The position numbers and the translations under genes are program-made. From IMG/VR virus record IMGVR_UViG_3300037502_003770, positions 248,001-312,000 of that record: 64,000 nucleotides of DNA, one strand, 5' to 3'. The notes beneath the pieces were generated by a model, which saw only the letters and a program-made list of their open reading frames with translations, did no database searches and had not been told where the DNA came from. Positions 1-52,679 of this stretch are shown here, in pieces (the stretch's first letter is position 1; every line of letters begins with the position of its first letter).

Positions 1-1290
1 AATGATTTTTTTAATAAGAAAAGAAATCTTACTTTAGATTATAAAATATATGGTACATTAAATAATTCAGAAAATTTTCTTTATAATAAAAAAATTAACC
101 CTTCTAGTATAAGTGATTTCTTAAAAGATACTGATTTTTTTTATGATGAAGATAATTTAGAAAATTCAAATTATGATATTTATAATCAATTTAATTATTA
201 TATCGTATATCCAAGTAATTATAAATTGGTAGATTCAGATAATAATTATTTTCAAGTGCAATATAAAAAATTATCAGTTAATAATGATTTTAAAATACTA
301 GATTGTTCATATTCTAATGATATTTACAATGGTAAAATATATAATTATATTATAAATAATGATATTAATATAAAAGATAAATATACTTATTTAGAAAAAT
401 ATGAAAAAGAAATACCATTAACTGATTTATATTTATATATCGAACCAAAAAATTATACTTCTTTTAATGAAAGAGTTTTTAAAAATTATAATACTTATAA
501 TAAAAGTTTTTCAGCTTTAACAACAGGATTTAATAATGTTACATCTATTACAACTACATTACTTAATATAATTAAACCATCAAATTTTAGTATATCAGAA
601 TTTAAAACATTTTATGAGAAAAAATTATTAACATTTTTTAACTTATTTAATTTAGAATTAAATGATATTAATTTTCAAATATTAAAAGAGTTTTTAATAA
701 ATTATATAGATACATCTGATAATAGATTTTTTGATAAGTCATTATTTTATAAAGAAAATGACGTTTTAAATGGAGAAGTTTATTTTTTTAATGAAGATGA
801 TTATAGTTTTTCATTAGTTCAAGAACAATATTATTCAATAAAAAATAAAATACAAGATGATTTAATTAATGAAAATAAATATACAGCTTACACTTATAAT
901 ATAGTAAATAATAAAGTAGAAACTGAATTTGAATTTAAATATAAACCATTTTATCCAATAAATATTAGGAAGTTTTCAAATTATCTTGAAACAATTTATA
1001 TATCAGGAATTAATAATACAATTATACCTGATTATAGTATTAAAAATGAAACATATTATCTATGGAGAGATTTATTGGATATTGGTTTTATTGAACAAGA
1101 TGAAAATGATACTAACGGTGTAGATTACCCTTTTATAAATCAAAAACATTATTTATATAATAATATAAATATACAAGTACTACCTGATTTGTCAGATAGA
1201 AATACAATAATTTTATTTAAAGATTTACTTAGTAATAAAACTATTACAAAAGAAATTAATGAACTTAACATAGGTAATTTTATATGTTAA
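1..1290 (+). CDS. Putative virion structural protein, 5'-truncated by the window edge
   Basis: Frame 1 is open from base 1 into the 226..1290 ORF, so the TTG start at 226 is probably internal. Asn/Tyr-rich, with a C-terminal YLWRDLLDIGF..GVDYPF block, inside a structural-gene run. Confidence 0.55.
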   Translation, partial: NDFFNKKRNLTLDYKIYGTLNNSENFLYNKKINPSSISDFLKDTDFFYDEDNLENSNYDIYNQFNYYIVYPSNYKLVDSDNNYFQVQYKKLSVNNDFKILDCSYSNDIYNGKIYNYIINNDINIKDKYTYLEKYEKEIPLTDLYLYIEPKNYTSFNERVFKNYNTYNKSFSALTTGFNNVTSITTTLLNIIKPSNFSISEFKTFYEKKLLTFFNLFNLELNDINFQILKEFLINYIDTSDNRFFDKSLFYKENDVLNGEVYFFNEDDYSFSLVQEQYYSIKNKIQDDLINENKYTAYTYNIVNNKVETEFEFKYKPFYPINIRKFSNYLETIYISGINNTIIPDYSIKNETYYLWRDLLDIGFIEQDENDTNGVDYPFINQKHYLYNNINIQVLPDLSDRNTIILFKDLLSNKTITKEINELNIGNFIC

Positions 1291-2075
1291 AATTAAAAGA
1301 TAAAAATAAAGTAATTAACTTTACATTAACTAAAAAAAATGAAAAAGTATCTTCTAAAGAAGATTATAATTCTTATATAAATAAAGTTTCAGAAGAAAAT
1401 ATTATATTTCCAAAAGATGAAGAAATTACATTATTTTATCCTGAAGATAATTTTAATATTATACCATTTTATAAAACAAACAATAGTGATTTTTTATCAT
1501 TTAATACATACACTTCAATATTATATAATGAAAATGAATTAAAATATATTAATGATAATTTAAAGACTTCATATTATATTTTTTCAATATATGATAATTA
1601 TGATAGTAATAACCAAAAATTATTAAATCAATTTAAAATTAATGCTGGTGAGAAAGGTACGTATAATATTGTTAATCAACTTATAACTCCTAGATTAAAA
1701 TATTTTAATAATCAAGGTTTAACTAAATCTTTTAATGTTTTACCTATACCAATAGATAAACTGAAAAATAACACTATTTATTTAAAAATAGTGTTTTTTA
1801 ATTCAAAAAATGGTTTGTTTACTTATTTCAATAATAGTAGTCAAATTTTAACAACTGAGGAAAAAAATTATATAACAACAATAATTAATCCTATAAATAA
1901 AACCTATACTTTTAATAGTAACACTATTGAAATTACCCAATCTTCTATTAAAGATAGTTTTATTTATGAAAATAATAAATTAAATACCAATAAGAATACT
2001 TTATCACCATTAAATGATTCTAATGATGATATTTCTTTTGGTATAGATAATATTTTAAAAAAATTCAAAATATGA
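1284..2075 (+). CDS. Hypothetical, probable virion protein
   Basis: 263-aa ORF overlapping the upstream stop; context only. Confidence 0.5.
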   Translation: MLKLKDKNKVINFTLTKKNEKVSSKEDYNSYINKVSEENIIFPKDEEITLFYPEDNFNIIPFYKTNNSDFLSFNTYTSILYNENELKYINDNLKTSYYIFSIYDNYDSNNQKLLNQFKINAGEKGTYNIVNQLITPRLKYFNNQGLTKSFNVLPIPIDKLKNNTIYLKIVFFNSKNGLFTYFNNSSQILTTEEKNYITTIINPINKTYTFNSNTIEITQSSIKDSFIYENNKLNTNKNTLSPLNDSNDDISFGIDNILKKFKI

Positions 2076-2248
2076 TAGAAGCATTAAGTCTATTTTTTTT
2101 ATTTATGTCCATTGTTAAAGTTATAGGGACATTATACTATATAGTTTACTCATTTATAAAGAAAGAACCTATATTCTTTGAAAAAGAAGAAGAAAGGTTA
2201 ATGAACTGGTTTAGTTTTGCTTATATTCTAACATATATATTTTTTTAA
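2072..2248 (+). CDS. Small membrane protein (58 aa, two hydrophobic segments), absent from the ORF track
   Basis: The ATG overlaps the upstream TGA (ATGA). Translates MIEALSLFFLFMSIVKVIGTLYYIVYSFIKKEPIFFEKEEERLMNWFSFAYILTYIFF and fills the gap exactly. Confidence 0.65.
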   Translation: MIEALSLFFLFMSIVKVIGTLYYIVYSFIKKEPIFFEKEEERLMNWFSFAYILTYIFF

Positions 2249-2251
2249 TGT

Positions 2252-2740
2252 ATGGATATAGTAATTATTTTAGAATATCTTGTTTATTATGAATCTAGGT
2301 CTGGGATAAAACAAATGCAAATAAATTTTCGTTTATTTAATAAATATCTCTATGATTATAGATATAATCTTTTAATGATGGATTTTATTAAGGTATATTA
2401 TTCTTGTAATATAAATGAATGGTTTAGAAAGATTATATCTAGTGATGATGAATATTATCTTTTATTAAAAGATATATTAGAAAAAAATATAGAAGTATTT
2501 AATTATTTACCTTATATTACAATATTTAATAACGATAAATTAATATGTAAACTTTTTAAATATAATACAAACCCTTTCAAAGATTTAAAAAAACGTTATA
2601 TAGAACATTTTATAAATAAAAATTCATATTCAAAATTACAATTTTTAAGAAATAAAGAAAGAATTATAAAAATATATAATGAAGGCGATAAATCTATTAA
2701 AGATTATCTACCTGAAAATTTTAAATATATTTTAGATTAA
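2252..2740 (+). CDS. Hypothetical protein; N-terminus loosely resembles the array motif
   Basis: 162 aa, begins MDIVIILEYLVYYE. Confidence 0.55.
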   Translation: MDIVIILEYLVYYESRSGIKQMQINFRLFNKYLYDYRYNLLMMDFIKVYYSCNINEWFRKIISSDDEYYLLLKDILEKNIEVFNYLPYITIFNNDKLICKLFKYNTNPFKDLKKRYIEHFINKNSYSKLQFLRNKERIIKIYNEGDKSIKDYLPENFKYILD

Positions 2741-2742
2741 AA

Positions 2743-2751
2743 ACTATTTAT
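2743..2751 (+). promoter_or_regulatory. Putative late-promoter motif ACTATTTAT
   Basis: About 20 nt upstream of the neck gene. The same motif recurs upstream of about 12 other starts. Confidence 0.6.
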
Positions 2752-2770
2752 ATTTATAAGTTAAATATAA

Positions 2771-3889
2771 ATGGAAATCTTAGATAGGGAAAAATTATTT
2801 AGACAAATTAGAGTTGAATGTATAGCTACGGCTAGACCAGCAGTTAATAAAGATTTAACAGACGATGTTATATTAACTCAAATTGAAATAGCTATGGAAG
2901 ATTACATGGCTTATATACAAAACTGGTTAACATTACAACAATGGTCTTCTTTGTCTAATTTAGATATATCGCAAGCTGACTTAGTTAATGCTTTTACAAC
3001 TAAAACATTAGATTTTGAAAAAGAATTCGCAGCAGCTTTTGGAAAACAAACTGGTATAGGTGTTATAGGTGATTGGGAATTAAAAAAGGATTTTGTAACA
3101 ATATCCGCAAATACTCAAAGTTATTTAATACCAGCTAATAGAGAAATAAATCAAGTTTTATGGGAAACACCGCCACAATTGGCAGGAAATATTATAGACC
3201 CATTTACACCTAATTCTTGGGCAGCAGCCCCTTATGGTTGGAATGTTGGGGGTGTACCAGCATCAGCTTTATTACCTGCATTTTCTTTAATGCTTACTTC
3301 GCAAGATAGGATGCAAAAGAAAAAACTTTTACAAAGTGAATTAACTTATAAAATAAGTCCTGGACCTAACGGTACGAAAAGATTATTTTTATATCCGATG
3401 CCTGGCGGTAGAGATGAAATGACTGGACCTGGTTTTGCATCTTTGAAAAGATTTGAAGGTTCTCAAGTATGGTATTGGTATTATGATACTAATACTTTGG
3501 GTAGAGATAAATGTTTAGAAGAAAATAATGATATTATAATATTACCAACAGATGTACCTTTTAGAATTTTAAAATGGGAAAGATTAAATTCACCTACACA
3601 AAATAAAGTTAGAAGATTAGCTGTATCTTATTGTAAAAAATATGTTGGTATGGTTATGGGTTTATATTCAGGTAAAATATCAGCACCTAATAACGATGAT
3701 TTACAATTAGATTATAATATGTTTATTGAACAATCAGAAAAAGAAAAGGAAAAAATATTTGAAGAACTTAAAGAAGAACTTAAAGAATTAGATTATACTA
3801 ATATAATAAAAAAGAAAGCTGAAATGGCTGACAGTTTAAATACTGTATTAAAATATTCACCACCTCAACAACCATTCTATTTCTTTTAA
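2771..3889 (+). CDS. Neck/head-completion protein, T4 gp13-like
   Basis: N-terminal PAVNKDLTDDVILTQIEIAMEDY and C-terminal KKYVGMVMGLYSG..LQLDY..EKEKIFEEL resemble gp13-type adaptors; preceded by the late motif. Confidence 0.65.
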   Translation: MEILDREKLFRQIRVECIATARPAVNKDLTDDVILTQIEIAMEDYMAYIQNWLTLQQWSSLSNLDISQADLVNAFTTKTLDFEKEFAAAFGKQTGIGVIGDWELKKDFVTISANTQSYLIPANREINQVLWETPPQLAGNIIDPFTPNSWAAAPYGWNVGGVPASALLPAFSLMLTSQDRMQKKKLLQSELTYKISPGPNGTKRLFLYPMPGGRDEMTGPGFASLKRFEGSQVWYWYYDTNTLGRDKCLEENNDIIILPTDVPFRILKWERLNSPTQNKVRRLAVSYCKKYVGMVMGLYSGKISAPNNDDLQLDYNMFIEQSEKEKEKIFEELKEELKELDYTNIIKKKAEMADSLNTVLKYSPPQQPFYFF

Positions 3890-3927
3890 AATAAAAAATC
3901 TACTTTTATTAAGTAGATTTTTTATTT
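3889..3927. terminator. Bidirectional intrinsic terminator between convergent genes
   Basis: Perfect 17-bp inverted repeat AAATAAAAAATCTACTT-ttatt-AAGTAGATTTTTTATTT, with A/T tracts in both arms. Confidence 0.75.
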
Positions 3928-4292
3928 GGTTGCATTTGTTTAATACTTTCTTGAATTTTCTTTCTTAATTCATCATCTAAAACTTCTAATTTCTTATTAT
4001 CCTCATCTATTTCTTTAGAACTTAATTTACCATTGTTAATAGCTGTTACATATTGAATATGTAGTTTCATTAAATCCATCTGAAATTTAAAAAATTGTTC
4101 TAAACTCTTTTGAGCATTGTTTCTAACGGTTTCAAATTGTATAATATCCGAATCATCCACCATCTTATCAATAGCTCTCCTGTAGTCTCTCTGTGCGTTA
4201 TCAATCAACATATCAAGATGTCTATTGATTTCATTAAACCTCTTTTTTAAAGATTCGTCATTAAATTCAATTTCACTCTTTCTTCTTTGCAT
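3909..4292 (-). CDS. Hypothetical helical/coiled-coil protein
   Basis: 127-aa ORF in a tightly packed minus-strand operon. Confidence 0.6.
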   Translation of the reverse strand: MQRRKSEIEFNDESLKKRFNEINRHLDMLIDNAQRDYRRAIDKMVDDSDIIQFETVRNNAQKSLEQFFKFQMDLMKLHIQYVTAINNGKLSSKEIDEDNKKLEVLDDELRKKIQESIKQMQPNKKST

Positions 4293-4297
4293 TTTAT

Positions 4298-4828
4298 TTA
4301 AAATATTATTAAACCTAATAATAATAAAGTTAAAACATTAGTTGTACCTAATATTATTATTCTATTATTTCTAGTTTTTATTTTTTTATCTTTATCTTCT
4401 ATAAGTAGTAATTTTTCATTAATAATTTTATCTTTATTTTGTAAAGATTTATTCATATTAGATATTTCACTATTTTGAACAGTAATTATTTCATGATAGT
4501 TTTCAATTATATCATCTTTTTCTTTTATAACCTCTTTATATTTAGCAATAATTTCCTTATTAACTTTAATAGATTCTTTAAGTTTACTAATTATACTATC
4601 TTTTTTTTCTAACCTTAATAATAAATATTCAGCATTTTTCTTATTAAATAAATTCTCATTTTTTAAAACAGCTAAATCTCTTATTTGTTTAGTATTAAAC
4701 AAAAATATAGTGTCCTTTAAAATAAAAGGTACTTTGCTTTCATATCTAATTTCAGGTTTAATGCTTTGAGATAAACATATAAATGGAATCAATAGAAGCG
4801 TTATTAAGATAATATATATTTTTTTCAT
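4298..4828 (-). CDS. Exported coiled-coil protein with C-terminal TM (spanin-like candidate)
   Basis: Signal peptide MKKIYIILITLLLIPFICLS|Q, long heptad coiled coil, C-terminal hydrophobic anchor. Confidence 0.5.
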   Translation of the reverse strand: MKKIYIILITLLLIPFICLSQSIKPEIRYESKVPFILKDTIFLFNTKQIRDLAVLKNENLFNKKNAEYLLLRLEKKDSIISKLKESIKVNKEIIAKYKEVIKEKDDIIENYHEIITVQNSEISNMNKSLQNKDKIINEKLLLIEDKDKKIKTRNNRIIILGTTNVLTLLLLGLIIF

Positions 4829-5171
4829 TTTTTTCTTTTATATTATTATTGATTTTATTTTCTAATATTTTATCATTATAATTTAAAGTATCAATATCTT
4901 TATTTATTAAAGAATCTTTATATTCTAAAAGAGATATTTTATTATTTAAATAAATAATGTTTTTATCTAAAGAATCTATTACGTTATTTAATGAATCTAT
5001 TTTATAAATATTTTTATCCGTAAAATTATCTTCTACAAATTGTTTATTATTACTAATAATAAAATATAAAACAAAGTATGATAAAACAACTAATGAAATA
5101 TATATTACATTTTTAGGTATTTTATTATATTTGTCCGATAGGGTTTGCATTATTTTCTTCATTCTCTTCAC
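4758..5171 (-). CDS. N-terminal TM plus coiled-coil protein (i-spanin-like candidate)
   Basis: TM VIYISLVVLSYFVLYFII followed by a coiled coil; overlaps the downstream gene by 71 nt. Confidence 0.5.
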   Translation of the reverse strand: MKRMKKIMQTLSDKYNKIPKNVIYISLVVLSYFVLYFIISNNKQFVEDNFTDKNIYKIDSLNNVIDSLDKNIIYLNNKISLLEYKDSLINKDIDTLNYNDKILENKINNNIKEKNEKNIYYLNNASIDSIYMFISKH

Positions 5172-5523
5172 CGTTTAACCATAAATCATAATAAGTATAT
5201 ATTTTTTCTATAACTTCTAATGATTCGTCTGTTAATTTTAAATTATCAGTTGTTAAAGTACAACCATCCATAAAATTATACTTGAATAAAATTTTATTAT
5301 TTGAATCAACTGGAACATAAGCTTCTATAAATTTATTATCTTCCGTTTCTTCATACTTTATAAATTTAATTCTAGTTGAAATAGCTTTTTTAAATTTATC
5401 TTGTATATCTTGTTGTATATCTAAATCAGCAGAGCTAACTTCTTCTTTAAGAAGATTAGTCTTACTTTTAAAATTTCTCATCTTGCTAACTAAATCTTTA
5501 GTTGATAAGTTTCTATCTTTCAT
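5125..5523 (-). CDS. Hypothetical late protein
   Basis: Preceded on the minus strand by the ACTATTTAT motif (5539-5547). Confidence 0.55.
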   Translation of the reverse strand: MKDRNLSTKDLVSKMRNFKSKTNLLKEEVSSADLDIQQDIQDKFKKAISTRIKFIKYEETEDNKFIEAYVPVDSNNKILFKYNFMDGCTLTTDNLKLTDESLEVIEKIYTYYDLWLNGEENEENNANPIGQI

Positions 5524-5538
5524 AATAAAATGTTTTAT

Positions 5539-5564
5539 ATAAATAGTAATTGTGAACTATTTAA
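5539..5564. promoter_or_regulatory. Back-to-back pair of late-promoter motifs
   Basis: ATAAATAGT (minus-strand ACTATTTAT) at 5539-5547 and ACTATTTAA at 5556-5564, between divergent genes. Confidence 0.6.
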
Positions 5565-5583
5565 TAATATATTACATAATATT

Positions 5584-6114
5584 ATGAATAATAAACAGAA
5601 AAAAATAATATCAACACCTACAGACCCATATAGATATTATGGAAATGAAGATTTTGAACATGATTTAGGTTATATTCAAGAATATTATAGTAGAGATGTT
5701 AGTACAAAAATAATACTTTACCAAATAGATACTGTTAAAACAAAAGTTAATCAACTTTATGGTGAAGCTAAAGCATACGATAAAAAAATATTACCACCAA
5801 TAGAATTAACAGCTATGATTGAAATTGGTGATATAAATTCAAAAAATTTAACAAGTACTGGTATTGTAGATGAAACTTATGATAGTTTTAAATTCTCTGT
5901 GTTTATAAATGAACTTAATGAAAAAAATGTTTCTATAAAAAGAGGTGATTTTATATTATATAACGATGGTACAGTATCTAATTTCTTTGAAATAAATAAA
6001 GTATCAAATATATTATCAAAGAACACAATAGGAGGTTTAAAACCATATTTCTTCTCTTGTGAAGCTATACTTCAAACAAATAACGTATTACCTAAAGAAT
6101 TAAAGATTGTTTAA
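5584..6114 (+). CDS. Neck/head-closure protein, T4 gp14-like
   Basis: IILYQID..KTKVNQLYGEA..KRGDFILY pattern. The start is probably Met19 of the called ORF (5584), because the late motif lies within the 5530-5583 extension. Confidence 0.6.
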   Translation: MNNKQKKIISTPTDPYRYYGNEDFEHDLGYIQEYYSRDVSTKIILYQIDTVKTKVNQLYGEAKAYDKKILPPIELTAMIEIGDINSKNLTSTGIVDETYDSFKFSVFINELNEKNVSIKRGDFILYNDGTVSNFFEINKVSNILSKNTIGGLKPYFFSCEAILQTNNVLPKELKIV

Positions 6115-6117
6115 TAA

Positions 6118-6360
6118 TTATAATAATCGATAATAAATAATTTTATAATTATTATTAGTATGTATTTTATTCTTACTATATAGAGTAACCCATTCATAAT
6201 ATATATCTTTTTTACTTCTATTTAAATCAGACTTTAAACAAAGACAAAAATCTACATGATTAAATATATTAGCAGGGTTGTCAGTACCATCCATATTATT
6301 ATCAATAATATATAAACTTTCTCTATAATAAGTTGTATTTATTTGTATTTCTATTTTCAT
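6118..6360 (-). CDS. Small array-family protein
   Basis: MKIEIQINTTYYRE...KIIYYRLL. Confidence 0.7.
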   Translation of the reverse strand: MKIEIQINTTYYRESLYIIDNNMDGTDNPANIFNHVDFCLCLKSDLNRSKKDIYYEWVTLYSKNKIHTNNNYKIIYYRLL

Positions 6361-6365
6361 ATTTT

Positions 6366-6551
6366 TTAGTAATAAGGTTTGTTTAATACATCTTCAAAAC
6401 ATACATGAGCTTCATTAATAAATGGAATGAAAATAGTAAATTGATAGTTTACAACATGTATACTTTTAATAATAACTAATGATTCGATACAACCATTTAA
6501 AAATAAATATTCATAATAAAAATTATTATTAATTCTAATTAATATTTTCAT
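6366..6551 (-). CDS. Small array-family protein
   Basis: MKILIRINNNFYYE...KPYY. Confidence 0.7.
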   Translation of the reverse strand: MKILIRINNNFYYEYLFLNGCIESLVIIKSIHVVNYQFTIFIPFINEAHVCFEDVLNKPYY

Positions 6552-6557
6552 AATTTT

Positions 6558-6758
6558 TTATTTACCATAATCACGATAGTATTTTACTATATTATATTTA
6601 CCAGGAAAAAAACAAAATTTATTTTCAAAATACTGATAAAATAACCAATCAATAAATTTAAGAAACCTACAATTATATCTTATATCAAAAGAAAATTCTA
6701 AAACAGAATAAAGAAATTCACGATATATAATATGTGTTAAAGTAATATTTATATTCAT
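6558..6758 (-). CDS. Small array-family protein
   Basis: MNINITLTHIIYRE...VKYYRDYGK. Confidence 0.7.
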   Translation of the reverse strand: MNINITLTHIIYREFLYSVLEFSFDIRYNCRFLKFIDWLFYQYFENKFCFFPGKYNIVKYYRDYGK

Positions 6759-6764
6759 AATTTT

Positions 6765-6968
6765 TTATTCGTGATAAGAATAATAAGTATTAACAACTAT
6801 TCTATCTTTTAAGGTAGAATTTTTAAATAATAAAATACTATGATATTTGTTTGTTTTGTTATAAAAATGAATTTTTATATATGAACCAATAAATGAATTT
6901 ATAATATCGTTGTCAATATATATTTCTTTATATTCAAGAAAATAATCAATGTAAATAAATATTTCCAT
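6765..6968 (-). CDS. Small array-family protein
   Basis: MEIFIYIDYFLEYKE...NTYYSYHE. Confidence 0.7.
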   Translation of the reverse strand: MEIFIYIDYFLEYKEIYIDNDIINSFIGSYIKIHFYNKTNKYHSILLFKNSTLKDRIVVNTYYSYHE

Positions 6969-6970
6969 AA

Positions 6971-7156
6971 TTAGAAACTATAATATTTATTACGATTTTT
7001 ACTAGGATATTTAATCATATAAGAATAAATTAAAGAAAATTCATTTAAAATTTTATTATCACTTTTTATTTCACATATAATATATGATATATTAGTATAA
7101 TAATAACATTCAAAATATTTTACATGTATATTATATAAATCAATTAATATTCGCAT
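6971..7156 (-). CDS. Small array-family protein
   Basis: MRILIDLYNIHVKYFE...KYYSF. Confidence 0.7.
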   Translation of the reverse strand: MRILIDLYNIHVKYFECYYYTNISYIICEIKSDNKILNEFSLIYSYMIKYPSKNRNKYYSF

Positions 7157-7379
7157 AAATATTATAATATTTACTGTGGTAACGTAAAAATATAAAATAA
7201 CTAAAATAATAGTTATCTGATAGTAAATCAGGGAATTCTAATTCATCTTTAATAAGAAAGAAATCATCTATAGTATTTATTTTTAATAAATTGATAATTA
7301 CTATAATTTGATTATCATTTCCATTAAATAAATTTTCAAAATAAGTTATAATATTTTCTATTTTAATTAATATTTCCAT
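7140..7379 (-). CDS. Small array-family protein
   Basis: MEILIKIENIITYFE...KYYNIYANIN. Confidence 0.7.
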   Translation of the reverse strand: MEILIKIENIITYFENLFNGNDNQIIVIINLLKINTIDDFFLIKDELEFPDLLSDNYYFSYFIFLRYHSKYYNIYANIN

Positions 7380-7382
7380 AGT

Positions 7383-7580
7383 TTAATAAAATTTATACTG
7401 TTCATCATGTAAACTAAAATATATTTTATTATCGTTTTCCCAATTATATATTATATAGTTAATATAATATTCTTTTCTTAGACGAGTTAAAGGATATAAT
7501 ATTAAATTAGAATTAAATAGAAATCCTGTATCAGAGTTCTCCCTATAATAAGAATTATACGTTTCTATTTCTATTTCCAT
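7383..7580 (-). CDS. Small array-family protein (recent duplicate of the next gene)
   Basis: MEIEIETYNSYYRE...IIYNWENDNKIYFSLHDEQYKFY. Confidence 0.75.
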   Translation of the reverse strand: MEIEIETYNSYYRENSDTGFLFNSNLILYPLTRLRKEYYINYIIYNWENDNKIYFSLHDEQYKFY

Positions 7581-7767
7581 AGTTTAATAGTATTTATATT
7601 CTTTATTATGAGTCGAAAAATATATCTTACCATCATTTCTCCAATTATTATATATGATATATTTCTTTAATATTAAAGATAATTTTAAAATAGATTTAAA
7701 TTTATATTCTTTGTCAGAGCTATATTCCTTATAATAAGAATTATACGTTTCTATTTCTATTTCCATA
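7544..7767. repeat. 38-bp perfect direct repeat covering two array gene starts
   Basis: TATAATAAGAATTATACGTTTCTATTTCTATTTCCATA at 7544-7581 and 7730-7767. Confidence 0.9.
7584..7766 (-). CDS. Small array-family protein (recent duplicate of the previous gene)
   Basis: MEIEIETYNSYYKE...IYNNWRNDGKIYFSTHNKEYKYY. Confidence 0.75.
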   Translation of the reverse strand: MEIEIETYNSYYKEYSSDKEYKFKSILKLSLILKKYIIYNNWRNDGKIYFSTHNKEYKYY

Positions 7768-8541
7768 ATTACTAAAATACTGATATATTTCCACTTTTGT
7801 TAAATAAGGACTTGTAATAAATGATTTTCCTTTAGTAAGGTCTTCATTTTCAAATACATCTTTTATATAAGAAAGATTATTTTTATCAAAAACTAAGACT
7901 TTATAAATCATATTATGTTTATCAGGTGTAGTTATTTTACCAACATTGCTTCCACGTCTAATAATAGAAAAATCGTATTCTAAAGAATCATAATTTTTAT
8001 CACGTTTATCAAATAATTTAAATAAATCACTTTTATTAGAAGTATTGCTTTTGTTTAATAAACCGTTCTTTGGTCTAATATAAATATTAAAACAACAATG
8101 AAGTTTTCTACTATCAGAAAAATTTACTATTCCTAAATCAATACTTTCAACTAAATCAAAATCAAATAAAGTATTTGTATTATTTAATTGAGTGATTGGT
8201 AAAATAAAACCTACTACATCAGATATTTTAACTGATTTTTTAAAAAAACTTCTAGCTAAATTATTTCTTTCACCAAAAGGAGGGTTTCCTATAATTAATC
8301 TACCTTTTTGATAATCAATACCTAATTTAAGAAAATCAGCTTTTATAATAGAATCATCTTCAGGTTCAATATCGTAACCAATACAATCAGGTATTAATTT
8401 TAGAAAAGAACCATTTCCAGCAGAAGGTTCTATTACTTGAGAAATTTCAATATTATGTAAATTACATATTTCATATATTTTATTTATACAAAATTGAGCT
8501 GTTTCTTGAGGAGTATAGTACTTGTCGTTTTCTATTTTCAT
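7741..8541 (-). CDS. DNA adenine methyltransferase (gamma-class motif order)
   Basis: YYTP, SAM motif VIEPSAGNGSF, catalytic IIGNPPFG. Confidence 0.85.
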   Translation of the reverse strand: MKIENDKYYTPQETAQFCINKIYEICNLHNIEISQVIEPSAGNGSFLKLIPDCIGYDIEPEDDSIIKADFLKLGIDYQKGRLIIGNPPFGERNNLARSFFKKSVKISDVVGFILPITQLNNTNTLFDFDLVESIDLGIVNFSDSRKLHCCFNIYIRPKNGLLNKSNTSNKSDLFKLFDKRDKNYDSLEYDFSIIRRGSNVGKITTPDKHNMIYKVLVFDKNNLSYIKDVFENEDLTKGKSFITSPYLTKVEIYQYFSNYGNRNRNV

Positions 8542-8747
8542 AATATTTGTGAATTAATGAATCTACTGTATTTTGCAATTTTGTTTATAATAAAATTAAT
8601 ATTTCTATAAAATTTAATATTTGTTTCACTATGATATAATCTATTATATTGAATAAGCATTGTAAATGAAAATCTATAATTTTTAAAGATACTTAAATTA
8701 TCTATTTCAAAATAAGTAAAGTTTTCAGTTTTAATACTTAAAATCAT
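8538..8747 (-). CDS. Small array-family protein
   Basis: MILSIKTENFTYFE. Confidence 0.7.
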   Translation of the reverse strand: MILSIKTENFTYFEIDNLSIFKNYRFSFTMLIQYNRLYHSETNIKFYRNINFIINKIAKYSRFINSQIL

Positions 8748-8998
8748 TTTATTTTATATGAACGAAGTGTTTTTAATATTTCATCATCTATTAATTTAGT
8801 AGTTTCATATGATATGAGTTTTGACATGAAAGTTTCTATATTATTAGTTTCATAATAAAAAGTTTTAGAATCAATATGATTTATACTATTTTCTTCAATA
8901 TAAACAGTATATTCTAAATCTAATTTTATTAAAGTAATACTAATTTCAAAAGAATTTTCTTTATAAGAAAAATTATTTGTTTTGATTAAAATTTTCAT
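8744..8998 (-). CDS. Small array-family protein
   Basis: MKILIKTNNFSYKEN; shares internal KTFYYE with KTTYYE of its neighbour. Confidence 0.7.
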   Translation of the reverse strand: MKILIKTNNFSYKENSFEISITLIKLDLEYTVYIEENSINHIDSKTFYYETNNIETFMSKLISYETTKLIDDEILKTLRSYKIK

Positions 8999-9263
8999 TT
9001 GTTAACATATTTAAATTAAAATTTAAAGGTACTTCACTAATAAATGAAGGTACTTTTATATTTATTGTACATAGGTGAAAATGGCTTTCATAATAAGTTG
9101 TTTTTTTAGAAAAACTAACAACATTATAGTAATAATTATTATCAAAATATAATCTTATTATTAAACTAGGTAAATGAATAAAAGCACCAATATCATAATT
9201 AGAATTTTCATAATCAAAATTTTCTATATAAGAAAAATTATTTATTTTAATTTGTAATTTCAT
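8973..9263 (-). CDS. Small array-family protein
   Basis: MKLQIKINNFSYIEN. Confidence 0.7.
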   Translation of the reverse strand: MKLQIKINNFSYIENFDYENSNYDIGAFIHLPSLIIRLYFDNNYYYNVVSFSKKTTYYESHFHLCTINIKVPSFISEVPLNFNLNMLTNENFNQNK

Positions 9264-9435
9264 GATTTAAATAATATTTATTTTTTCTATTATTATGTAA
9301 TAAAGTATCCTTTTCATAATATAATCTTATATAATCATATTCAGGTAAAAATATAATTCTACAATAAATGTAATAATATTTAAAATCATAATCTTCACTA
9401 TATTCAAAATTTTCTAAAGTAATTAAAATCAACAT
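9247..9435 (-). CDS. Small array-family protein
   Basis: MLILITLENFEYSE...KYYLNHEITN. Confidence 0.7.
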   Translation of the reverse strand: MLILITLENFEYSEDYDFKYYYIYCRIIFLPEYDYIRLYYEKDTLLHNNRKNKYYLNHEITN

Positions 9436-9439
9436 AATT

Positions 9440-9631
9440 CTAAAGTTTATAATATTTTATATTTTGTAAATCAAATATTAGTTTAGATTTAAAAATATTA
9501 TAATAAGATTTATCATCAATAAAATTTAATAAATTTATAGTAAATTTTATAATTGTAGAACTACCATGTACTAGACGTTCACAATAAAATTTATAATTAT
9601 CAAACATTACTCTAATATTAATATTTTCCAT
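9440..9631 (-). CDS. Small array-family protein (start revised to internal Met)
   Basis: Met13 of the called ORF gives MENINIRVMFDNYKFYCE...IKYYKL and reduces the overlap with the ATP-grasp gene. Confidence 0.6.
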   Translation of the reverse strand: MENINIRVMFDNYKFYCERLVHGSSTIIKFTINLLNFIDDKSYYNIFKSKLIFDLQNIKYYKL

Positions 9632-10400
9632 CAATAACTTGTTTAAATCTTTTATAATAGTTTTCAAAAAAATTCATATTATCAAAACCATAAGTACCTG
9701 TACCAAAAATATCATTTATTTCAATTAAAGATGTTTTACCATTTTTAAGTACTGCAAAATCTAATGTATATAATTCAGGAGTTTTATTATAAGTAATATT
9801 ACTAAAATCTTGAATACATTCCATAACTAATTTTTTATCAAGAAAATAATTATTATCATTTAATGTATCACCAAGATATAATTTAACTGATAAAATTTCA
9901 TTCTTATGAATCCATAATCTATATTCTGATAATATATCAATATGTGTTGAATATAAAAACGGTACTGAAGATTCGATATTACTATCAACTAGTAAATTAA
10001 ATTGTCTTTCATTTTCAATAAATGAACCATTAAATAATTTAGTCATGTTTAAAGGTTTTACAAAAATACCTTCATTATGTTCTTTGATTAATTTATCAAA
10101 ACTGTTTATATTTCCAAGAATTAATTTTCTTTCAAAAAACTTCTCATTCATATAAATCATTTGATTTGTTAAAGAATAAGTTTCTTCAATATTATAATAT
10201 TCTTTAAGTTTTTGAAAACAATATTCAACGCTACCAGAAAAAATATCACCTTCTTGAAAGGAAGATTCATCTGTTGTGTATTCAATATTTGTTTTGTTCC
10301 ACCAATTATATTTTTTAATTGAGGAAATTAAATCAAAAGTATGTTGATAGAGCGGTAATCCGTCTTCATCTTTTTGATATATAAGTTTAATATTTTTCAT
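9618..10400 (-). CDS. ATP-grasp domain protein (R2K/DUF4343-like)
   Basis: IFVKP..TKLFNG, SEYRLWI and YTLDFAV....TSLIEIND..G.YG motifs. Confidence 0.8.
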   Translation of the reverse strand: MKNIKLIYQKDEDGLPLYQHTFDLISSIKKYNWWNKTNIEYTTDESSFQEGDIFSGSVEYCFQKLKEYYNIEETYSLTNQMIYMNEKFFERKLILGNINSFDKLIKEHNEGIFVKPLNMTKLFNGSFIENERQFNLLVDSNIESSVPFLYSTHIDILSEYRLWIHKNEILSVKLYLGDTLNDNNYFLDKKLVMECIQDFSNITYNKTPELYTLDFAVLKNGKTSLIEINDIFGTGTYGFDNMNFFENYYKRFKQVIDGKY

Positions 10401-10608
10401 TAAATATATTAGGATTAAGTTTTAGTTGTAAATTAAACAACCTCCACATATCATATTCTTCATAATAATTATATTCGGACCAAATATGTGAAATAGTACC
10501 ATCAGTAAAATAAAAATCTAATTTTAACGGTAAAAATCTACCTTCTAATTTAATTGTAAAATCTATTTCTGAATAAGTGATGTGATTTGTTTTAATTATT
10601 ATATTCAT
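10387..10608 (-). CDS. Small array-family protein
   Basis: MNIIIKTNHITYSE. Confidence 0.7.
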   Translation of the reverse strand: MNIIIKTNHITYSEIDFTIKLEGRFLPLKLDFYFTDGTISHIWSEYNYYEEYDMWRLFNLQLKLNPNIFNEKY

Positions 10609-10883
10609 TAGAAACTGTTTTTATTATAAAAATTACAAGTATGAAAATTTTTAGAACTAAATATTAGTACAATATCATTAAATATATCCATATATATAAA
10701 CATTGTATTATATTTATAAAGAAAATCATTATCTTTAATATTAAATCCTATACAAGTAAGAAATTTACCATACGAAGTACTATAACTTTCAAGATAATTT
10801 ACAGATTCTTCATATAGTATATTATTAATTGTAATTTGTAAAATAATATATCTACCTGTTTTTTTATTAAAAATACCAGCCAT
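10608..10883 (-). CDS. Small array-family protein (motif offset by about 11 aa)
   Basis: MAGIFNKKTGRY-IILQITINNILYEE...CNFYNKNSF. Confidence 0.65.
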   Translation of the reverse strand: MAGIFNKKTGRYIILQITINNILYEESVNYLESYSTSYGKFLTCIGFNIKDNDFLYKYNTMFIYMDIFNDIVLIFSSKNFHTCNFYNKNSF

Positions 10884-10895
10884 AAAAAAATTTTA

Positions 10896-11165
10896 TTAAG
10901 TTAGTTGATTATAGTTGTAGTAATAATTATTTCCGTAATCTAAATAATAGTAAAATTGATTAAATCTAATAATTATATCTAATTCAATATATTCTCTATT
11001 TTTATCAATAGTTTTATTATTAAGATTATAAATATGATTATTATGATAATAATCAGATGGAAAAGTAAATAATTCTTTATAAAAGTCGATTTTATAAAGA
11101 AAGAAATAAGAATCTACTAATTCTTTATATTCAAAAAAATCATTTGCTATATATAAGTTATTCAT
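10896..11165 (-). CDS. Small array-family protein
   Basis: MNNLYIANDFFEYKE...NNYYYNYNQLT. Confidence 0.65.
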   Translation of the reverse strand: MNNLYIANDFFEYKELVDSYFFLYKIDFYKELFTFPSDYYHNNHIYNLNNKTIDKNREYIELDIIIRFNQFYYYLDYGNNYYYNYNQLT

Positions 11166-11382
11166 AATATTTAAATTTTAAAATTTTATAACCAAAAGTA
11201 CTAATATTAAGAATATCATGATTATCTGATATAGTTGAATTATCTATATCAAATGCTAATCTATTTTTATATTGTAAATCATTTACTGATAATAAAATAC
11301 CAGCATGTATAAATCTATTAAAAATTATACCTGTAGTTTCCTTATAAAGAAAGTTATCAGATAGTTTAATTATTATTTCCAT
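11158..11382 (-). CDS. Small array-family protein
   Basis: MEIIIKLSDNFLYKE...FKYYE. Confidence 0.7.
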   Translation of the reverse strand: MEIIIKLSDNFLYKETTGIIFNRFIHAGILLSVNDLQYKNRLAFDIDNSTISDNHDILNISTFGYKILKFKYYE

Positions 11383-11639
11383 AAAAAATCAATTTTATCT
11401 TTAAAAGTAACATATTCAGAATTGTAATAATCATAAGATTTATGCTGTGTAATTAAATAATTATATTCATAAATAAAATTATGTTCATTTAAAATATTAC
11501 AAGTAATACCCTTATCAACACATTCAATAAAATTAAAATTGAAATATTCTTGTACTTCATACTTATTTAAGTAAACAAGATTAAAAGAATCACGTCTTTC
11601 AACATAGTTTATTTTATTTAAATAAAGTTTTATTTCCAT
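11373..11639 (-). CDS. Small array-family protein
   Basis: MEIKLYLNKINYVE. Confidence 0.7.
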   Translation of the reverse strand: MEIKLYLNKINYVERRDSFNLVYLNKYEVQEYFNFNFIECVDKGITCNILNEHNFIYEYNYLITQHKSYDYYNSEYVTFKDKIDFLWK

Positions 11640-11647
11640 AAAATATT

Positions 11648-11836
11648 TTAGTTATAATAATTAAACTTTTCATAATCGAATAAATCAAATTTTATACAAT
11701 TATAAGACCTTGATTTAAATACGAACTTTTCGGTGGTATCAAATGATAATAAGTATATTATTTTGTAATGTAAAAAAATACCAATACTTGAATTTTCAGT
11801 ATAATTGATTTCTAAAAGTTCAATTGAAATTAACAT
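11648..11836 (-). CDS. Small array-family protein
   Basis: MLISIELLEINYTE...FNYYN. Confidence 0.7.
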   Translation of the reverse strand: MLISIELLEINYTENSSIGIFLHYKIIYLLSFDTTEKFVFKSRSYNCIKFDLFDYEKFNYYN

Positions 11837-12081
11837 AATTGATAAAAATTAAATTGAATATCTTTACGACCATCATAATCACCATCTTTAATTACAGAAT
11901 CAATATAAGATTGAATATAATAAGATTGATTAAAACTATTATAATCAAAAACAAAAATATATTCTTCTGTGATAATAGACCTTGATATTTTAAAAGATAA
12001 ATAAAGTCGAGATTCTATTCTATATTTAGAACAACGTTCAATATATTCATAATTATTTGTTTTTATATCTATTTCTAACAT
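11830..12081 (-). CDS. Small array-family protein
   Basis: MLEIDIKTNNYEYIE...FNFYQLC. Confidence 0.7.
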   Translation of the reverse strand: MLEIDIKTNNYEYIERCSKYRIESRLYLSFKISRSIITEEYIFVFDYNSFNQSYYIQSYIDSVIKDGDYDGRKDIQFNFYQLC

Positions 12082-12082
12082 A

Positions 12083-13927
12083 TTACTTTTTATAAATTTC
12101 TTTAAATTTATTAATTACTTCAGCAAGTACACTACTATTAGAATTATCTATATAATCAATATTATCTACAACTTTGTTAATAACTTTAAGTTTATTATTA
12201 ATAATTTCATAAATTGTCTCATCAATTGTTTCACTAAACAAAAATATAAATACATTTGTATGTTCTTTTTGTCCAGACCTATGTATTCTAGCATAACATT
12301 GTTCATTTTCGGCAGGAACATAGCTTTGTGATAACATAAACATATTCTTTGCTTTAGTTAAAGTAATACCTGCGTTACCAGCCCCAACTGTTAATAATAA
12401 ATTTTGTATAGTATTATTATCTCCTTGAAAAATATCAACAATATCTTGTCTTGTATCGGACTTTATATCACCAGTATATAATTCACTATTATTAAGAATG
12501 GTTTTAAGTTCTTTTAATGAAGATTTATAACAATCAAATATTAAAACTTTTTCATTTTCTTCATTTAAACGTTCAATATATTCTACTAAATATTTAGATT
12601 TTAATTTTGATGTATATTGTCTTAATTCGGTTAAGATTGTTAACGGTGTTTTTTGTTTTTCATTTAAAGAAATATTCATATTACCATTTTTATCTTCTTT
12701 ATAATCACTTAAATTATCCCAATTAGCATCTTTAAATCCACTTTCTATTCTTTTATATTCAGCTTCTTCTGAAGGTGTTAATTCTAAATAAATCTTATTT
12801 ATTGTTAAAGGAGGTAATTCTTTAAGAACATCTTCTTTTTTTACACGAAACATTATCTTTGATAATTTTTCATATATCATATCAAATTTAATATTATCAT
12901 TTATTTGTACGTATGTATTAATCTTATTATTAAAGAACATACCACAATATTCAGTATAGAATTTATTTTTACTTTTAAATTCTATCGGTCTTAATAATTT
13001 AAGTAAATTATATAATTCTTGTACTCTATTTGGAACTGGAGTACCTGTTAATAACATAAGATTTGTATTACTTAAAGATTTCTTAAAACTTTTAGTAAAA
13101 TTCTTAAACATTTGTGTTTTAGAATTCTTTAATTTATGTGCTTCATCAAAAATAATACTATCAACATTAGATAAACCTAAACTTGTTATTTTTTTATTAA
13201 CATCAAAATTTCTTGAAAAATACTCATAGTTAGTAATAATATATTTACTTTCTTCTAAAGAATAACAATTTAACTTAGATTTTGAATTTAAAACAAAAGC
13301 TTTTGAATTTGTAAAGTGATGTATTTCTTTAAGCCAATTAAGTTTTAAAGAACTAGGTACTATAACTAAAACTTTTTTACTTTGATTGATTTCTGATGCT
13401 AATATAGCTAATAATGTTTTACCAGTACCTAAATCGGCAGCTATTAAACTATTTTTTAAATGATTAGCAAATAATGCACCTTTTATTTGGTGATTATATG
13501 GTTTCACACCTTCTTTTAAATATTTAGAATAATCAAACTTTTCCGAAACTTCATCTAATGATTGTAAAAACGTATTTAGATTAGAATCTATTGTTGCAAT
13601 AATTTCTTTGTTTTTATCTTCCTTAATTTTTTTTCTCTTATAGAAATCTAATTTTGAAGAAAAAACTTCTTTATCTTCACTATTTACAAAAGAAAAAAAT
13701 ATATCTTTCCTTGATTTATATTCAGATATTAAACAATATAAATTATATCCGTTAAGATGCCAAGTCTTATCAGAAGGGTTATATTTTTTATCATCAAGTT
13801 TTTTTATATTAAAAACAAGCTCTTCATTATAAAATGACTTTAATGAAAAGGTCTTTTTATCCGAAAGGAGAGTTATGTTTACTTTAAAAATTTCAGTTGC
13901 CGTATGTATATTTGTATTTTCAAACAT
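12083..13927 (-). CDS. SNF2-family ATPase/helicase with a HARP-like N-terminus
   Basis: AADLGTGKT (Walker A), FDEAH, LTGTP..N, GITLT, QCYARIHRSGQ; N-terminal KYNPSDKTW. Confidence 0.92.
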   Translation of the reverse strand: MFENTNIHTATEIFKVNITLLSDKKTFSLKSFYNEELVFNIKKLDDKKYNPSDKTWHLNGYNLYCLISEYKSRKDIFFSFVNSEDKEVFSSKLDFYKRKKIKEDKNKEIIATIDSNLNTFLQSLDEVSEKFDYSKYLKEGVKPYNHQIKGALFANHLKNSLIAADLGTGKTLLAILASEINQSKKVLVIVPSSLKLNWLKEIHHFTNSKAFVLNSKSKLNCYSLEESKYIITNYEYFSRNFDVNKKITSLGLSNVDSIIFDEAHKLKNSKTQMFKNFTKSFKKSLSNTNLMLLTGTPVPNRVQELYNLLKLLRPIEFKSKNKFYTEYCGMFFNNKINTYVQINDNIKFDMIYEKLSKIMFRVKKEDVLKELPPLTINKIYLELTPSEEAEYKRIESGFKDANWDNLSDYKEDKNGNMNISLNEKQKTPLTILTELRQYTSKLKSKYLVEYIERLNEENEKVLIFDCYKSSLKELKTILNNSELYTGDIKSDTRQDIVDIFQGDNNTIQNLLLTVGAGNAGITLTKAKNMFMLSQSYVPAENEQCYARIHRSGQKEHTNVFIFLFSETIDETIYEIINNKLKVINKVVDNIDYIDNSNSSVLAEVINKFKEIYKK

Positions 13928-45656: not shown

Positions 45657-45944
45657 ATGGAAATATCAATTAAAACTAATAATATTACTTATTTTGAATC
45701 AAATAATGTTCATAATATTATTAAATGTTATTTTAGTAATCTTTATCTGATTTATGAATTAGAAATTCTTAAAGATAAGGATTACTTTTTAAGAATAAAA
45801 TTTGAAGATTATGATTGTTTCCTTTCTATTAAAAGAAATTTATTAGAATATAGATATATTAGTATTAAAGATTTTAATATATTATCTATTGGTACATACT
45901 TAAAAAATCCTCAGCACACAAAATACGAAAAACTTATTAAATAA
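45657..45944 (+). CDS. Dispersed member of the small array family
   Basis: MEISIKTNNITYFE matches the array consensus very closely. Confidence 0.7.
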   Translation: MEISIKTNNITYFESNNVHNIIKCYFSNLYLIYELEILKDKDYFLRIKFEDYDCFLSIKRNLLEYRYISIKDFNILSIGTYLKNPQHTKYEKLIK

Positions 45945-50262: not shown

Positions 50263-50301
50263 CAAAATATATTTCTAAAAGTATTATCTATATCAAACAA
50301 G

Positions 50302-50373
50302 ACGATTGTAGTTCAGCAGGTAGAACGAAGGTCAGAAAACCTTGAGTCGACAGTTCAAGTCTGTCCTTTCGTT
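50302..50373 (+). ncRNA. Non-canonical tRNA-like RNA, apparently derived from tRNA-Phe(GAA)
   Basis: Intact D arm GTTC-AGCAGGTA-GAAC and T arm GACAG-TTCAAGT-CTGTC. Anticodon arm AAGGT-CAGAAA-ACCTT has a 6-nt loop with no U33. Two T-T mismatches in the acceptor stem; no CCA. Confidence 0.65.
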
Positions 50374-50392
50374 TGTTTGATATTTTAATTTT

Positions 50393-50465
50393 GGTGTTGT
50401 AGCTCAGTTGGTAGAGCGATTGACTGTTAATCAATTGGTCGTAGGTTCAATCCCTACCATCACCG
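50393..50465 (+). tRNA. tRNA-Asn(GTT)
   Basis: Cloverleaf with ATTGA-CTGTTAA-TCAAT anticodon arm and G73; CCA not encoded. Confidence 0.92.
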
Positions 50466-50496
50466 CTTTATTTTAAAAATATAATCTTTCTTTAAT

Positions 50497-51102: not shown

Positions 51103-51117
51103 ATAAAATATAAACAA

Positions 51118-51191
51118 CGCAGGGTAGAGCAGTGGTCAGCTCGCAAGGCTCATAACCTTTGAGGTCGTTGGTTCGAATCCAATCCCTGCTA
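51118..51191 (+). tRNA. Initiator-type tRNA-Met(CAT)
   Basis: C1:T72 mismatch, A11-U24 pair (GAGC/GCTC), loop CTCATAA; one extra T at the 3' side of the anticodon stem. Confidence 0.85.
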
Positions 51192-51231
51192 CTAATTTAA
51201 ATTAATTTTACTATTTATATAATATATATTT

Positions 51232-52668: not shown

Positions 52669-52679
52669 CAATAAAATAC

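Follow-up and report, generated by a model that had tools for sequence, protein, structure and literature searches.

Lineage-specific gene expansions in large viruses are already known. The MGF110, MGF360, and MGF505 families of African swine fever virus and the ankyrin and BTB families of poxviruses consist of tandem, diverged paralogs that change in copy number between strains and have been linked to host range and immune evasion. Bacterial polymorphic-toxin immunity arrays (SUKH/Imm) are cell-encoded runs of small, diverged paralogs beside toxin genes, each of which is thought to neutralize one effector variant. The phage T4 internal protein IPI* blocks GmrSD. T4 internal proteins have in common only an N-terminal capsid targeting sequence (CTS) of 10-19 residues, with gp21 cutting after L/I-X-E, and their bodies are diverse defense proteins (PMC9026906, PMC3012670). 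Bacillus phage G carries a zinc-ribbon expansion of ≈35 copies that was called unprecedented and for which a transcription-factor or nucleoid role was proposed (PMC7824862). R2K.2 enzymes, finally, are predicted protein-modifying peptide ligases in phage-host conflict, with targets unknown (PMC4431377, PMC7824862). Here we describe a tandem array of 20 small genes at positions 6118-12081 of a 64,000-nt window, which covers positions 248,001-312,000 of the virus contig IMGVR_UViG_3300037502_003770, and we compare this array, the largest cluster of a family with at least 68 members in a single phage genome, with these systems.

The array lies on the minus strand and comprises 20 co-oriented open reading frames (ORFs) of 60-96 residues, numbered m01-m20 in the direction of the window coordinates. 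Only two other genes break the series, one encoding a methyltransferase-like protein and one an ATP-grasp enzyme, and an SNF2-family gene stands at its head. This layout had been described in an earlier note made from the letters of the DNA, and it is borne out by the ORF listing of the window, by Pfam and PHROG matches, and by the JGI and ENA gene callers, which independently predict the same array ORFs. All 20 proteins carry an N-terminal motif of 14 residues, h-x-I-x-I-x3-N-x2-Y-x-E, in which an Asn-rich turn is followed by F-x-Y-x-E. In the alignment of the 20 members, Tyr12, Glu14, and one C-terminal Tyr are invariant, in agreement with the Y-x-E that the note had reported in every member, and Ile5 is present in at least 90%. 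An aromatic pair near the C terminus, credited at that stage to about three quarters of the members, is real but was underestimated: by alignment, it occurs in 20 of 20, inside the last 16 residues in 14 members, and the remaining six run on for 15-35 residues past it as C-terminal extensions.

The leader motif lies far beyond what the starts of random AT-rich ORFs produce by chance. A degenerate DNA pattern of the motif matches the window six times, compared with 0.00 expected. In leave-one-out searches, a profile built from 19 members was scored against the omitted member among the 570 ORFs of the window, with a threshold of E < 0.05. With the leader alone, 17 of the 20 omitted members came out in first or second place and 15 of 20 were detected at the threshold, and the sole sequence to outrank omitted leaders was a 21st member at 45657-45944. 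Body-only profiles detected none of the 20 omitted bodies, so the architecture of a constant leader and an unalignable body holds statistically; the bodies have no conserved column except the C-terminal Tyr. The earlier description of the middles as mostly unalignable was correct in the main, but some neighbors do align over their full length (54% BLAST identity for m07/m08 and 40% for m10/m14). Our first reading of the family as full-length paralogs, taken from such BLAST pairs, was revised because the body-only leave-one-out failed. At other sites, an ungapped position-specific scoring matrix trained on window members only scored 20 of 61 small ORFs higher than the 99th percentile of shuffled sequences (0.6 expected). 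Double-motif calls numbered 48 in 153 kb of the phage versus 3.7 after shuffling of the same ORFs, and a control set of 977 kb of unrelated viral loci gave nine such calls, never two per locus. The 20 array ORFs are genuine genes, because they stay open where about one in ten random codons would be a stop (an estimate from base composition), because synonymous codons differ at the conserved Ile and Asn positions, because two independent callers agree, and because the ratio of nonsynonymous to synonymous differences between strains (pN/pS) is below 1.

The family extends well beyond the array. Other parts of the contig were found by a motif scan of viral contigs and extended via exact-protein look-ups, and the 180.6 kb read in this way amount to 57.8% of the contig, which makes all member counts lower bounds. 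Within them, at least 68 members occur at 10 sites (see table), and the array that the earlier note had treated as a self-contained module is instead one of at least 10 such places. When 153 kb had been read, 67 members made up 10.4% of that sequence. Tyr12 and Glu14 are still invariant among 48 members from four sites; across 67 members, the Glu lies at median position 14 (range 10-26), and position -2 relative to it holds Tyr in 65 of them and Phe in two. A longer-body subfamily of 83-138 residues has the leader M-[KR]-I-x-I-F-[ND]-[ND]-N-F-x-Y-[LV]-E and has only this leader in common with the rest. Iterative searching of the genome with hidden Markov models did not get past 30 members, the bodies being too divergent. 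For 23 of 67 members, the best paralog belongs to their own cluster (11 ± 3 expected), and for 16 it is the gene next to them, yet best-paralog identity has a median of 33% and a maximum of 54%, which points to copies arising partly through tandem duplication followed by deep divergence. The clusters adjoin DNA methyltransferases (at three sites), TnpB, an RNA ligase, a peptidyl-tRNA hydrolase, an AAA ATPase, and Hen1/PNKP, and their surroundings are accessory regions rich in conflict-type genes.

Two further small-gene observations come from the same genome. An ORF of 118 residues at L016:8999-9355 (plus strand) has a family-like start, M-K-I-I-I-D-L-E-N-V-I-Y-R-Y, without the Glu, and matches the Pfam entry DUF6642 at 25.2 bits, just short of the cut-off of 27. 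Nor is this family the only small-gene expansion in the genome: about nine tandem genes for proteins of 82-105 residues with an internal Y-[FL]-L-P-F-[KR]-I form a second, unrelated family at L198:14962-17772 (≈105.4-108.2 kb of the contig).

The same array is present in two other assemblies, ENA ERZ28593586 scaffold_385 and JGI 3300043338. The flank (window 1-6125) is 98.84% identical at the nucleotide level without gaps; the array is 92.5-95.2% identical. By the Nei-Gojobori method, pN/pS is 0.41 for the members, whereas eight flanking genes come to 0.04 and the two embedded enzymes to 0.09; values for individual members mostly fall at 0.07-0.5, with m10 and m05 at 0.72-0.86. In one strain pair, leader pN is 0.025 and body pN 0.042, on 13 and 75 changes, respectively. 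The gene m07 is missing in the other strains, m01 is swapped there for a different family member of 64 residues, and the 3' half of m10 has 78-87% nucleotide identity between strains. The array thus evolves faster than its flanks, at about ten times less constraint and with gain, loss, and replacement of members. Such fast evolution and gene turnover is the pattern expected of conflict genes. The identity pattern is mosaic, which suggests recombination within the array. A stretch of 450 nt across m03-m04 (6487-6936) is 100% identical, and 8731-9030 and 6191-6336 are at 78-87% or unalignable.

The earlier note knew of no named family with this layout, and our searches found none. A Pfam scan of the 20 members gave nothing significant (best E 0.032, in one of 20) and neither did a PHROG scan (best E 0.0063, in one of 20), with no family common to two members in either case; scans of 10 longer members against Pfam and PHROG were likewise without a significant match. 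The best E value in a sequence-profile search of the PDB was 0.81, and Foldseek against the PDB and BFVD, run with query models of low confidence, returned nothing below E 0.1. An exhaustive HMMER profile search of 1.84 billion representative proteins yielded four matches, namely three proteins of the window and one ortholog at 91% identity. Word-indexed searches with 20- and 48-sequence profiles returned the genome's own proteins only, and tblastn against 50,697 GenBank phages gave no match. In the literature, we found no described equivalent of the domain, the copy number, or the leader/clasp architecture. Among the databases searched, the family appears restricted to one phage lineage, with sensitivity being limited for such short proteins. 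A 91-residue ORF on the giant-virus contig IMGVR_UViG_GVMAG-M-3300023174-164 (L050:980-1255, minus strand) opens with M-I-I-S-I-T-S-D-N-T-E-Y-I-E, carries P-Y-Y-Q-N-N around residue 60, and has a C2H2-like segment at its end; it was considered as a relative and rejected, its weak profile match (E 0.0065) being probably due to chance.

AlphaFold2 (AF2) models of the family have low confidence, with predicted local distance difference test scores of 66.6 from a 21-sequence alignment and 56.7 from a 48-sequence alignment. Both models place a β-hairpin at residues 2-15, where local confidence is best, followed by further strands, in keeping with the β-hairpin-like leader proposed earlier. Enrichment is 2.2-fold for Tyr, 1.7-fold for Phe, and 1.4-fold for Ile, and Gly, Ala, and Pro are scarce; no hydrophobic stretch of 15 residues or more was found in the members. 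The isoelectric point (pI) ranges from 4.3 to 9.8 with a median of 7.8, and 26 of 58 members are basic (pI > 8) and 22 acidic. Composition and the AF2 models together predict that the members are soluble, β-rich small proteins. The C-terminal aromatic pair and a β-strand-like composition are retained in the bodies; this suits a single small fold whose surface varies and speaks against taking them for free payloads, the note having seen in them a diversified payload.

We favor, at a probability of roughly 40%, the explanation that this lineage-specific and massively expanded family, with the array as its largest cluster, consists of small β-rich proteins acting as diversified binders in host takeover or counter-defense. 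By geometry, a hairpin with a two-residue turn would put Ile3, Ile5, Phe10, Tyr12, and Glu14 on one face, and this conserved face and the C-terminal Tyr pair would together form a minimal conserved core or clasp, leaving the rest of the small domain's surface free to vary (pI, 4.3-9.8). Members would be made in the infected cell with early/middle-type conflict genes, such as those for the SNF2 ATPase, the DNA methyltransferases, the R2K ATP-grasp enzyme, and RNA repair, and would constitute a panel of binders on one scaffold, each directed at its own host or competitor factor, probably a polymorphic one, which it would neutralize or hijack. Function beyond the anatomy and the evolutionary pattern is our best guess, and several points weigh against it. 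The AF2 confidence is low, and the one-scaffold idea therefore rests mainly on motifs and composition. The association with methyltransferases and similar genes is weak, given that accessory genes cluster in this genome anyway. A pN/pS of 0.41 indicates relaxed purifying selection and does not demonstrate positive selection, and per-gene counts are small. The invariant Tyr-x-Glu at a fixed N-terminal distance could be a recognition or processing signal instead of a core, and the absence of homologs may stem partly from low search sensitivity for 60-residue, compositionally biased proteins.

Read as a signal, the hairpin would be an address label, either a capsid-targeting/ejection signal or a docking tag for a single phage machine, that routes at least 68 diversified small effectors; in a variant, the R2K ATP-grasp enzyme would recognize the label and modify the Glu. 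We hold this to be doubtful, although less so than any of the proposals below. The nearest of these in probability, which we consider unlikely, is that the members are capsid-targeted internal (ejection) proteins, with the leader as the CTS, the hydrophobic-x-Glu as a prohead protease site, and the bodies injected alongside the DNA against host defenses. A T4-like phage with Gp23, a Peptidase_S77 prohead protease, and, in relatives, a T4-type portal would suit such a role, as would the N-terminal position of the Glu with its invariant hydrophobic residue two before, a longer-body subfamily united by nothing but the leader, and the location of one family cluster, G, ≈3 kb from the head module. 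However, the P3-equivalent residue is never Leu or Ile, and the family therefore fails a defining feature of T4 internal proteins, though it may work likewise; Ala never follows the Glu. The phage's own Gp23 propeptide boundary, by comparison, falls between L-N-E and S (I/L-N-E in relatives), and a scaffold-like protein of 482 residues contains 19 [LI]-x-E and no Y-x-E. The members are also not uniformly basic, the arrays run in the same direction as replication and modification genes and not as head genes, the C-terminal Tyr pair is left without explanation, and 68 cargo species would be unprecedented. Improbable to a further degree is a largely neutral or selfish proliferation, in which small ORFs duplicate and drift in the permissive accessory parts of an oversized genome and are individually unimportant. 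The relaxed constraint, above all in m10 and m05, the gain and loss of members between strains, and the second expanded family, which suggests a general propensity, can all be read in this way, but drift does not account for a Glu and a preceding Tyr (or Phe) held among paralogs of such low identity, for ORFs that stay open where stops are frequent, for a pN/pS well below 1 in most members, or for giving ≈10% of the genome to genes of heavy packaging cost without benefit.

We regard as more improbable still that the members are nucleic-acid-binding or regulatory small proteins, in which case specific transcription factors or proteins that structure the nucleoid would have expanded in this lineage. 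The literature has a jumbo phage precedent for reading a small-domain expansion in this way (PMC7824862), nearly half of the members have a pI above 8, and clusters adjoin DNA-metabolism genes; nevertheless, no known DNA-binding motif or fold was matched in Pfam, PHROG, the PDB profile search, or Foldseek against the PDB and BFVD, 22 of 58 members are acidic, and rapid turnover between near-identical strains would be unusual for regulators of a conserved genome. The least probable of the proposals makes the members, as modified-peptide precursors or as protein targets, substrates of the embedded R2K.2 ATP-grasp ligase. With the leader as its recognition element, the enzyme would attach an amino acid or a peptide to them, either at the Glu14 side chain or at the C terminus. 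The enzyme is intact (PF18299 R2K_2, E 5e-26, 91.7 bits versus a cut-off of 26.2, profile positions 1-145 of 147, with R2K_3, PF14243, also matched), is strongly constrained, and lies inside the array overlapping both neighbors; ATP-grasp ligases act on carboxylates, and the only invariant acidic residue is Glu14. Against this, the enzyme occurs at one of 10 family sites, and no family members lie near the R2K.2 homologs of Pseudomonas phage pPa_SNUABM_DT01 and of an uncultured phage of 636 kb. The suggestion in the earlier note that the array might encode modified-peptide precursors is therefore weak. Embedding alone is no sign of coupling because the methyltransferase is embedded in the array in the same way. 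In addition, the enzyme is not of the graspetide/microviridin type, the bodies are without a repeated Thr/Ser/Lys-Asp/Glu core, and the members resemble folded β-rich domains and not leader-core peptides.

The contig as a whole has 312,694 bp and 20% GC, and the window is its end part. At locus L195, it encodes a PF07068 Gp23 major capsid protein and a PF03420 Peptidase_S77 prohead protease. The Gp23 homolog matches T4-like capsid genes in 2,157 phage records and is ≈41% identical, over its C-terminal 38%, to proteins of Microcystis phage Mel-JY01 and the Flavobacterium phages vB_FspM_immuto. Also encoded are a family B DNA polymerase, DnaB, a RecA-like protein, ribonucleotide reductase, and ThyX, and five tRNAs lie in the window. 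The contig belongs to an uncultivated jumbo phage that is very AT-rich and distantly T4-like. A Shine-Dalgarno-like core precedes one of the 57 window ORFs of at least 100 residues, and this scarcity, with the likeness of Gp23 to Flavobacterium phages, hints that the host is possibly a member of the Bacteroidota. In relatives whose neighboring 372-residue protein is 54-57% identical, Gp23 lies directly at the position of the array, and no family members were seen in the head-module regions of these relatives. A gene of 162 residues in the window (2252-2740, plus strand; start M-D-I-V-I-I-L-E-Y-L-V-Y-Y-E) was rejected as a candidate: it scores as a non-member, and the same-position gene in the 54-57% relatives is unrelated.

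Several neighboring genes deserve mention in their own right. The five tRNAs comprise one at 50301-50374 (plus strand), for which ARAGORN gives no identity and a two-base '(ga)' anticodon call, and tRNA-Asn, Met, Glu, and Asp beside it (50393-52754). Within this cluster sits a TnpB / IS605 OrfB-like gene (51232-52485, plus strand; HTH_OrfB_IS605, OrfB_IS605, Cas12f1-like TNB), and at least two further TnpB copies occur in the genome (L119:3739-4977 and L195:1258-2493), one of them inside a family array. DNA methyltransferases, of the N6_N4, the Dam-type D12, and a PHROG-only type, are encoded by five or more genes, three of which abut family clusters, and a Mom-like/GIY-YIG gene is also present. 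A Hen1-like methyltransferase and PNKP-ligase RNA-repair pair (L195:2788-6821; ≈212.2-216.2 kb of the contig) lies a few kb from cluster G and an AAA ATPase. The methyltransferase-like gene of the array has no Pfam match but many homologs of 36-59% identity in metagenomes, beside which we found no family members in 60 loci (367 kb). Queries of viral contigs with the SNF2 and ATP-grasp proteins returned the same contig only, and SNF2 had no match in metagenomes.

The 23 genes from SNF2 to the last member are packed into 7,810 nt; they overlap at 12 junctions, no gap exceeds 12 nt, and SNF2 is separated from the first member, m20, by 1 nt. Such packing is consistent with the single transcription unit proposed in the earlier note, plausibly running from the 110-bp divergent region upstream of SNF2 to m01. 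No intrinsic terminators were found in the unit. At 20% GC, scans for sigma-70 promoters (127 matches versus 105 expected) and for the T4 late-promoter motif TATAAATA (68 versus 51) are uninformative. Downstream, the array's last gene and a convergent gene of 194 residues (5530-6114) end 3 nt apart, and no terminator-like hairpin was found on either strand at this junction (6114-6118). Start codons in the array are ambiguous at 9440-9667 (TTG) versus 9440-9631 (ATG) and at 10608-10883.

Table. Genes of the array unit in window coordinates, the family sites along the contig, and the methyltransferase loci of the genome.
Feature	Position	Strand	Description	Basis
SNF2-family ATPase/helicase	12083..13927	-	614 aa; heads co-directional block	PF00176 E 1.7e-31; Helicase_C 6e-11; phrog_62 DNA helicase 1.5e-92
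m20	11830..12081	-	83 aa	Leader leave-one-out E 9e-5; ORF and alignment
m19	11648..11836	-	62 aa; C terminus FNYYN	ORF and alignment; used as AF2 target
m18	11373..11639	-	88 aa; C-terminal extension beyond DYYN	ORF and alignment
m17	11158..11382	-	74 aa	ORF and alignment
m16	10896..11165	-	89 aa; most divergent leader	Alignment; weak in leave-one-out
m15	10608..10883	-	91 aa; motif begins 13 residues in; start codon uncertain	Alignment; ortholog 96.7% in locus L003
m14	10387..10608	-	73 aa	Alignment; 40% identity to m10
ATP-grasp enzyme, R2K.2 clade	9618..10400	-	260 aa; 14-nt overlap with each neighbor	PF18299; phrog_7313; pN/pS 0.08
m13	9440..9631	-	63 aa from ATG; 75 aa from upstream TTG at 9667	JGI and ENA callers give 63 aa
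m12	9247..9435	-	62 aa	Alignment; DNA motif pattern
m11	8973..9263	-	96 aa; 91%-identical ortholog P0006 gave entry to related contigs	ORF; profile search
m10	8744..8998	-	84 aa; helical C-terminal extension; hot spot of between-strain divergence (62% aa identity)	ORF; strain comparison
m09	8538..8747	-	69 aa	ORF and alignment
DNA methyltransferase-like gene	7741..8541	-	266 aa; NPPF and EPSAGNG motifs in translation	phrog_5172 2e-33; phrog_799 DNA methyltransferase 5e-14
m08	7584..7766	-	60 aa	54% identity to m07; DNA motif pattern
m07	7383..7580	-	65 aa; duplicate of m08; absent in related strains	BLAST pair; strain comparison
m06	7140..7379	-	79 aa	ORF and alignment
m05	6971..7156	-	61 aa; between-strain pN/pS 0.86	ORF; strain comparison
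m04	6765..6968	-	67 aa; hairpin carries one-residue insertion	Alignment; weak HMM score
m03	6558..6758	-	66 aa	ORF and alignment
m02	6366..6551	-	61 aa; C terminus KPYY	Alignment; DNA motif pattern
m01	6118..6360	-	80 aa; final gene of block; related strains carry a different 64-aa family member instead	ORF; strain comparison
21st window member	45657..45944	+	95 aa; solitary; directly after ribonucleotide reductase small subunit	E 1e-3, outside training set
Family site	contig 20.7-23.9 kb		8 members	
Family site	contig 29.0-31.1 kb		9 members	
Family site	contig 33.9-38.4 kb		13 members	
Family site	contig 92.5 kb		1 member	
Family site	contig 99.4-100.7 kb		5 members	
Family site	contig 111.6 kb		1 member	
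Family site	contig 121.3-122.2 kb		3 members	
Family site	contig 208.0-210.7 kb		7 members	
Family site (array)	window 6118-12081		20 members; largest cluster	
Family site	contig 293.7 kb		1 member	
Methyltransferase / Mom-like loci	window 7741-8541, 34819-35784; L016:7662-8522; L053:5448-6188; L195:538-1176, 12379-13902			

If the family is what it seems, a single phage commits roughly 10% of its genome to 68 or more variants of a tiny protein absent elsewhere in current databases, and the family would be a compact natural case of protein evolution by conserved clasp and variable surface in a bacterial virus as well as a likely reservoir of new inhibitors of bacterial defense or host functions. 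Should the hairpin be an address label, no phage would be known to have a larger polymorphic arsenal of delivered anti-defense proteins, and the family would also be a display scaffold made by nature; in the ATP-grasp variant, an orphan R2K enzyme clade would gain its first substrates, with the candidates adjoining the enzyme. More generally, the hypothetical small ORFs of jumbo phages may be largely hidden paralogy that standard profile searches miss. The domain, copy number, and leader/clasp architecture are not described in the sources searched, and the known systems nearest to the family are compared with it below.

The T4 proteins IPI, IPII, IPIII, and Alt resemble the family in belonging to T4-like phages and in having a short leader that ends in hydrophobic-x-Glu, diverse bodies, polymorphic loci, and a proposed anti-defense role (PMC3012670, PMC9026906). 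The present family differs in its Tyr before the Glu (Phe in two of 67) without Ala after it, in its C-terminal Tyr pair, in having at least 68 copies versus a handful, in not being consistently basic, and in a replication and modification context versus head and late genes. Precursor arrays of graspetides and microviridins, which are ribosomally synthesized and post-translationally modified peptides, similarly set several small ORFs with a conserved leader beside an ATP-grasp gene; here, the ATP-grasp enzyme is of the R2K.2 type (CDC123-related clade; PF18299, PF14243), there is no lactone/lactam core motif, and nine of 10 sites are without ATP-grasp. With the SUKH/Imm immunity arrays, the family has in common the runs of small, highly diverged paralogs, but it is phage-encoded, and no toxin partner or sequence relationship was seen. 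The multigene families of eukaryotic viruses likewise form tandem diverged paralogs in variable regions and change in copy number between strains; they encode much larger proteins with recognizable folds, whereas the members described here are phage proteins of 60-100 residues with no known fold. The phage G zinc ribbon is also a small domain expanded to tens of copies in a single jumbo phage lineage. The present domain is a different one, lacking a metal-binding Cys/His pattern, and its copies, about twice as many in 58% of the genome, stand mainly in tight tandem arrays. As in other multigene expansions of large viruses, the paralogs are many and mostly tandem, their distribution is restricted, and they evolve faster and change in copy number.

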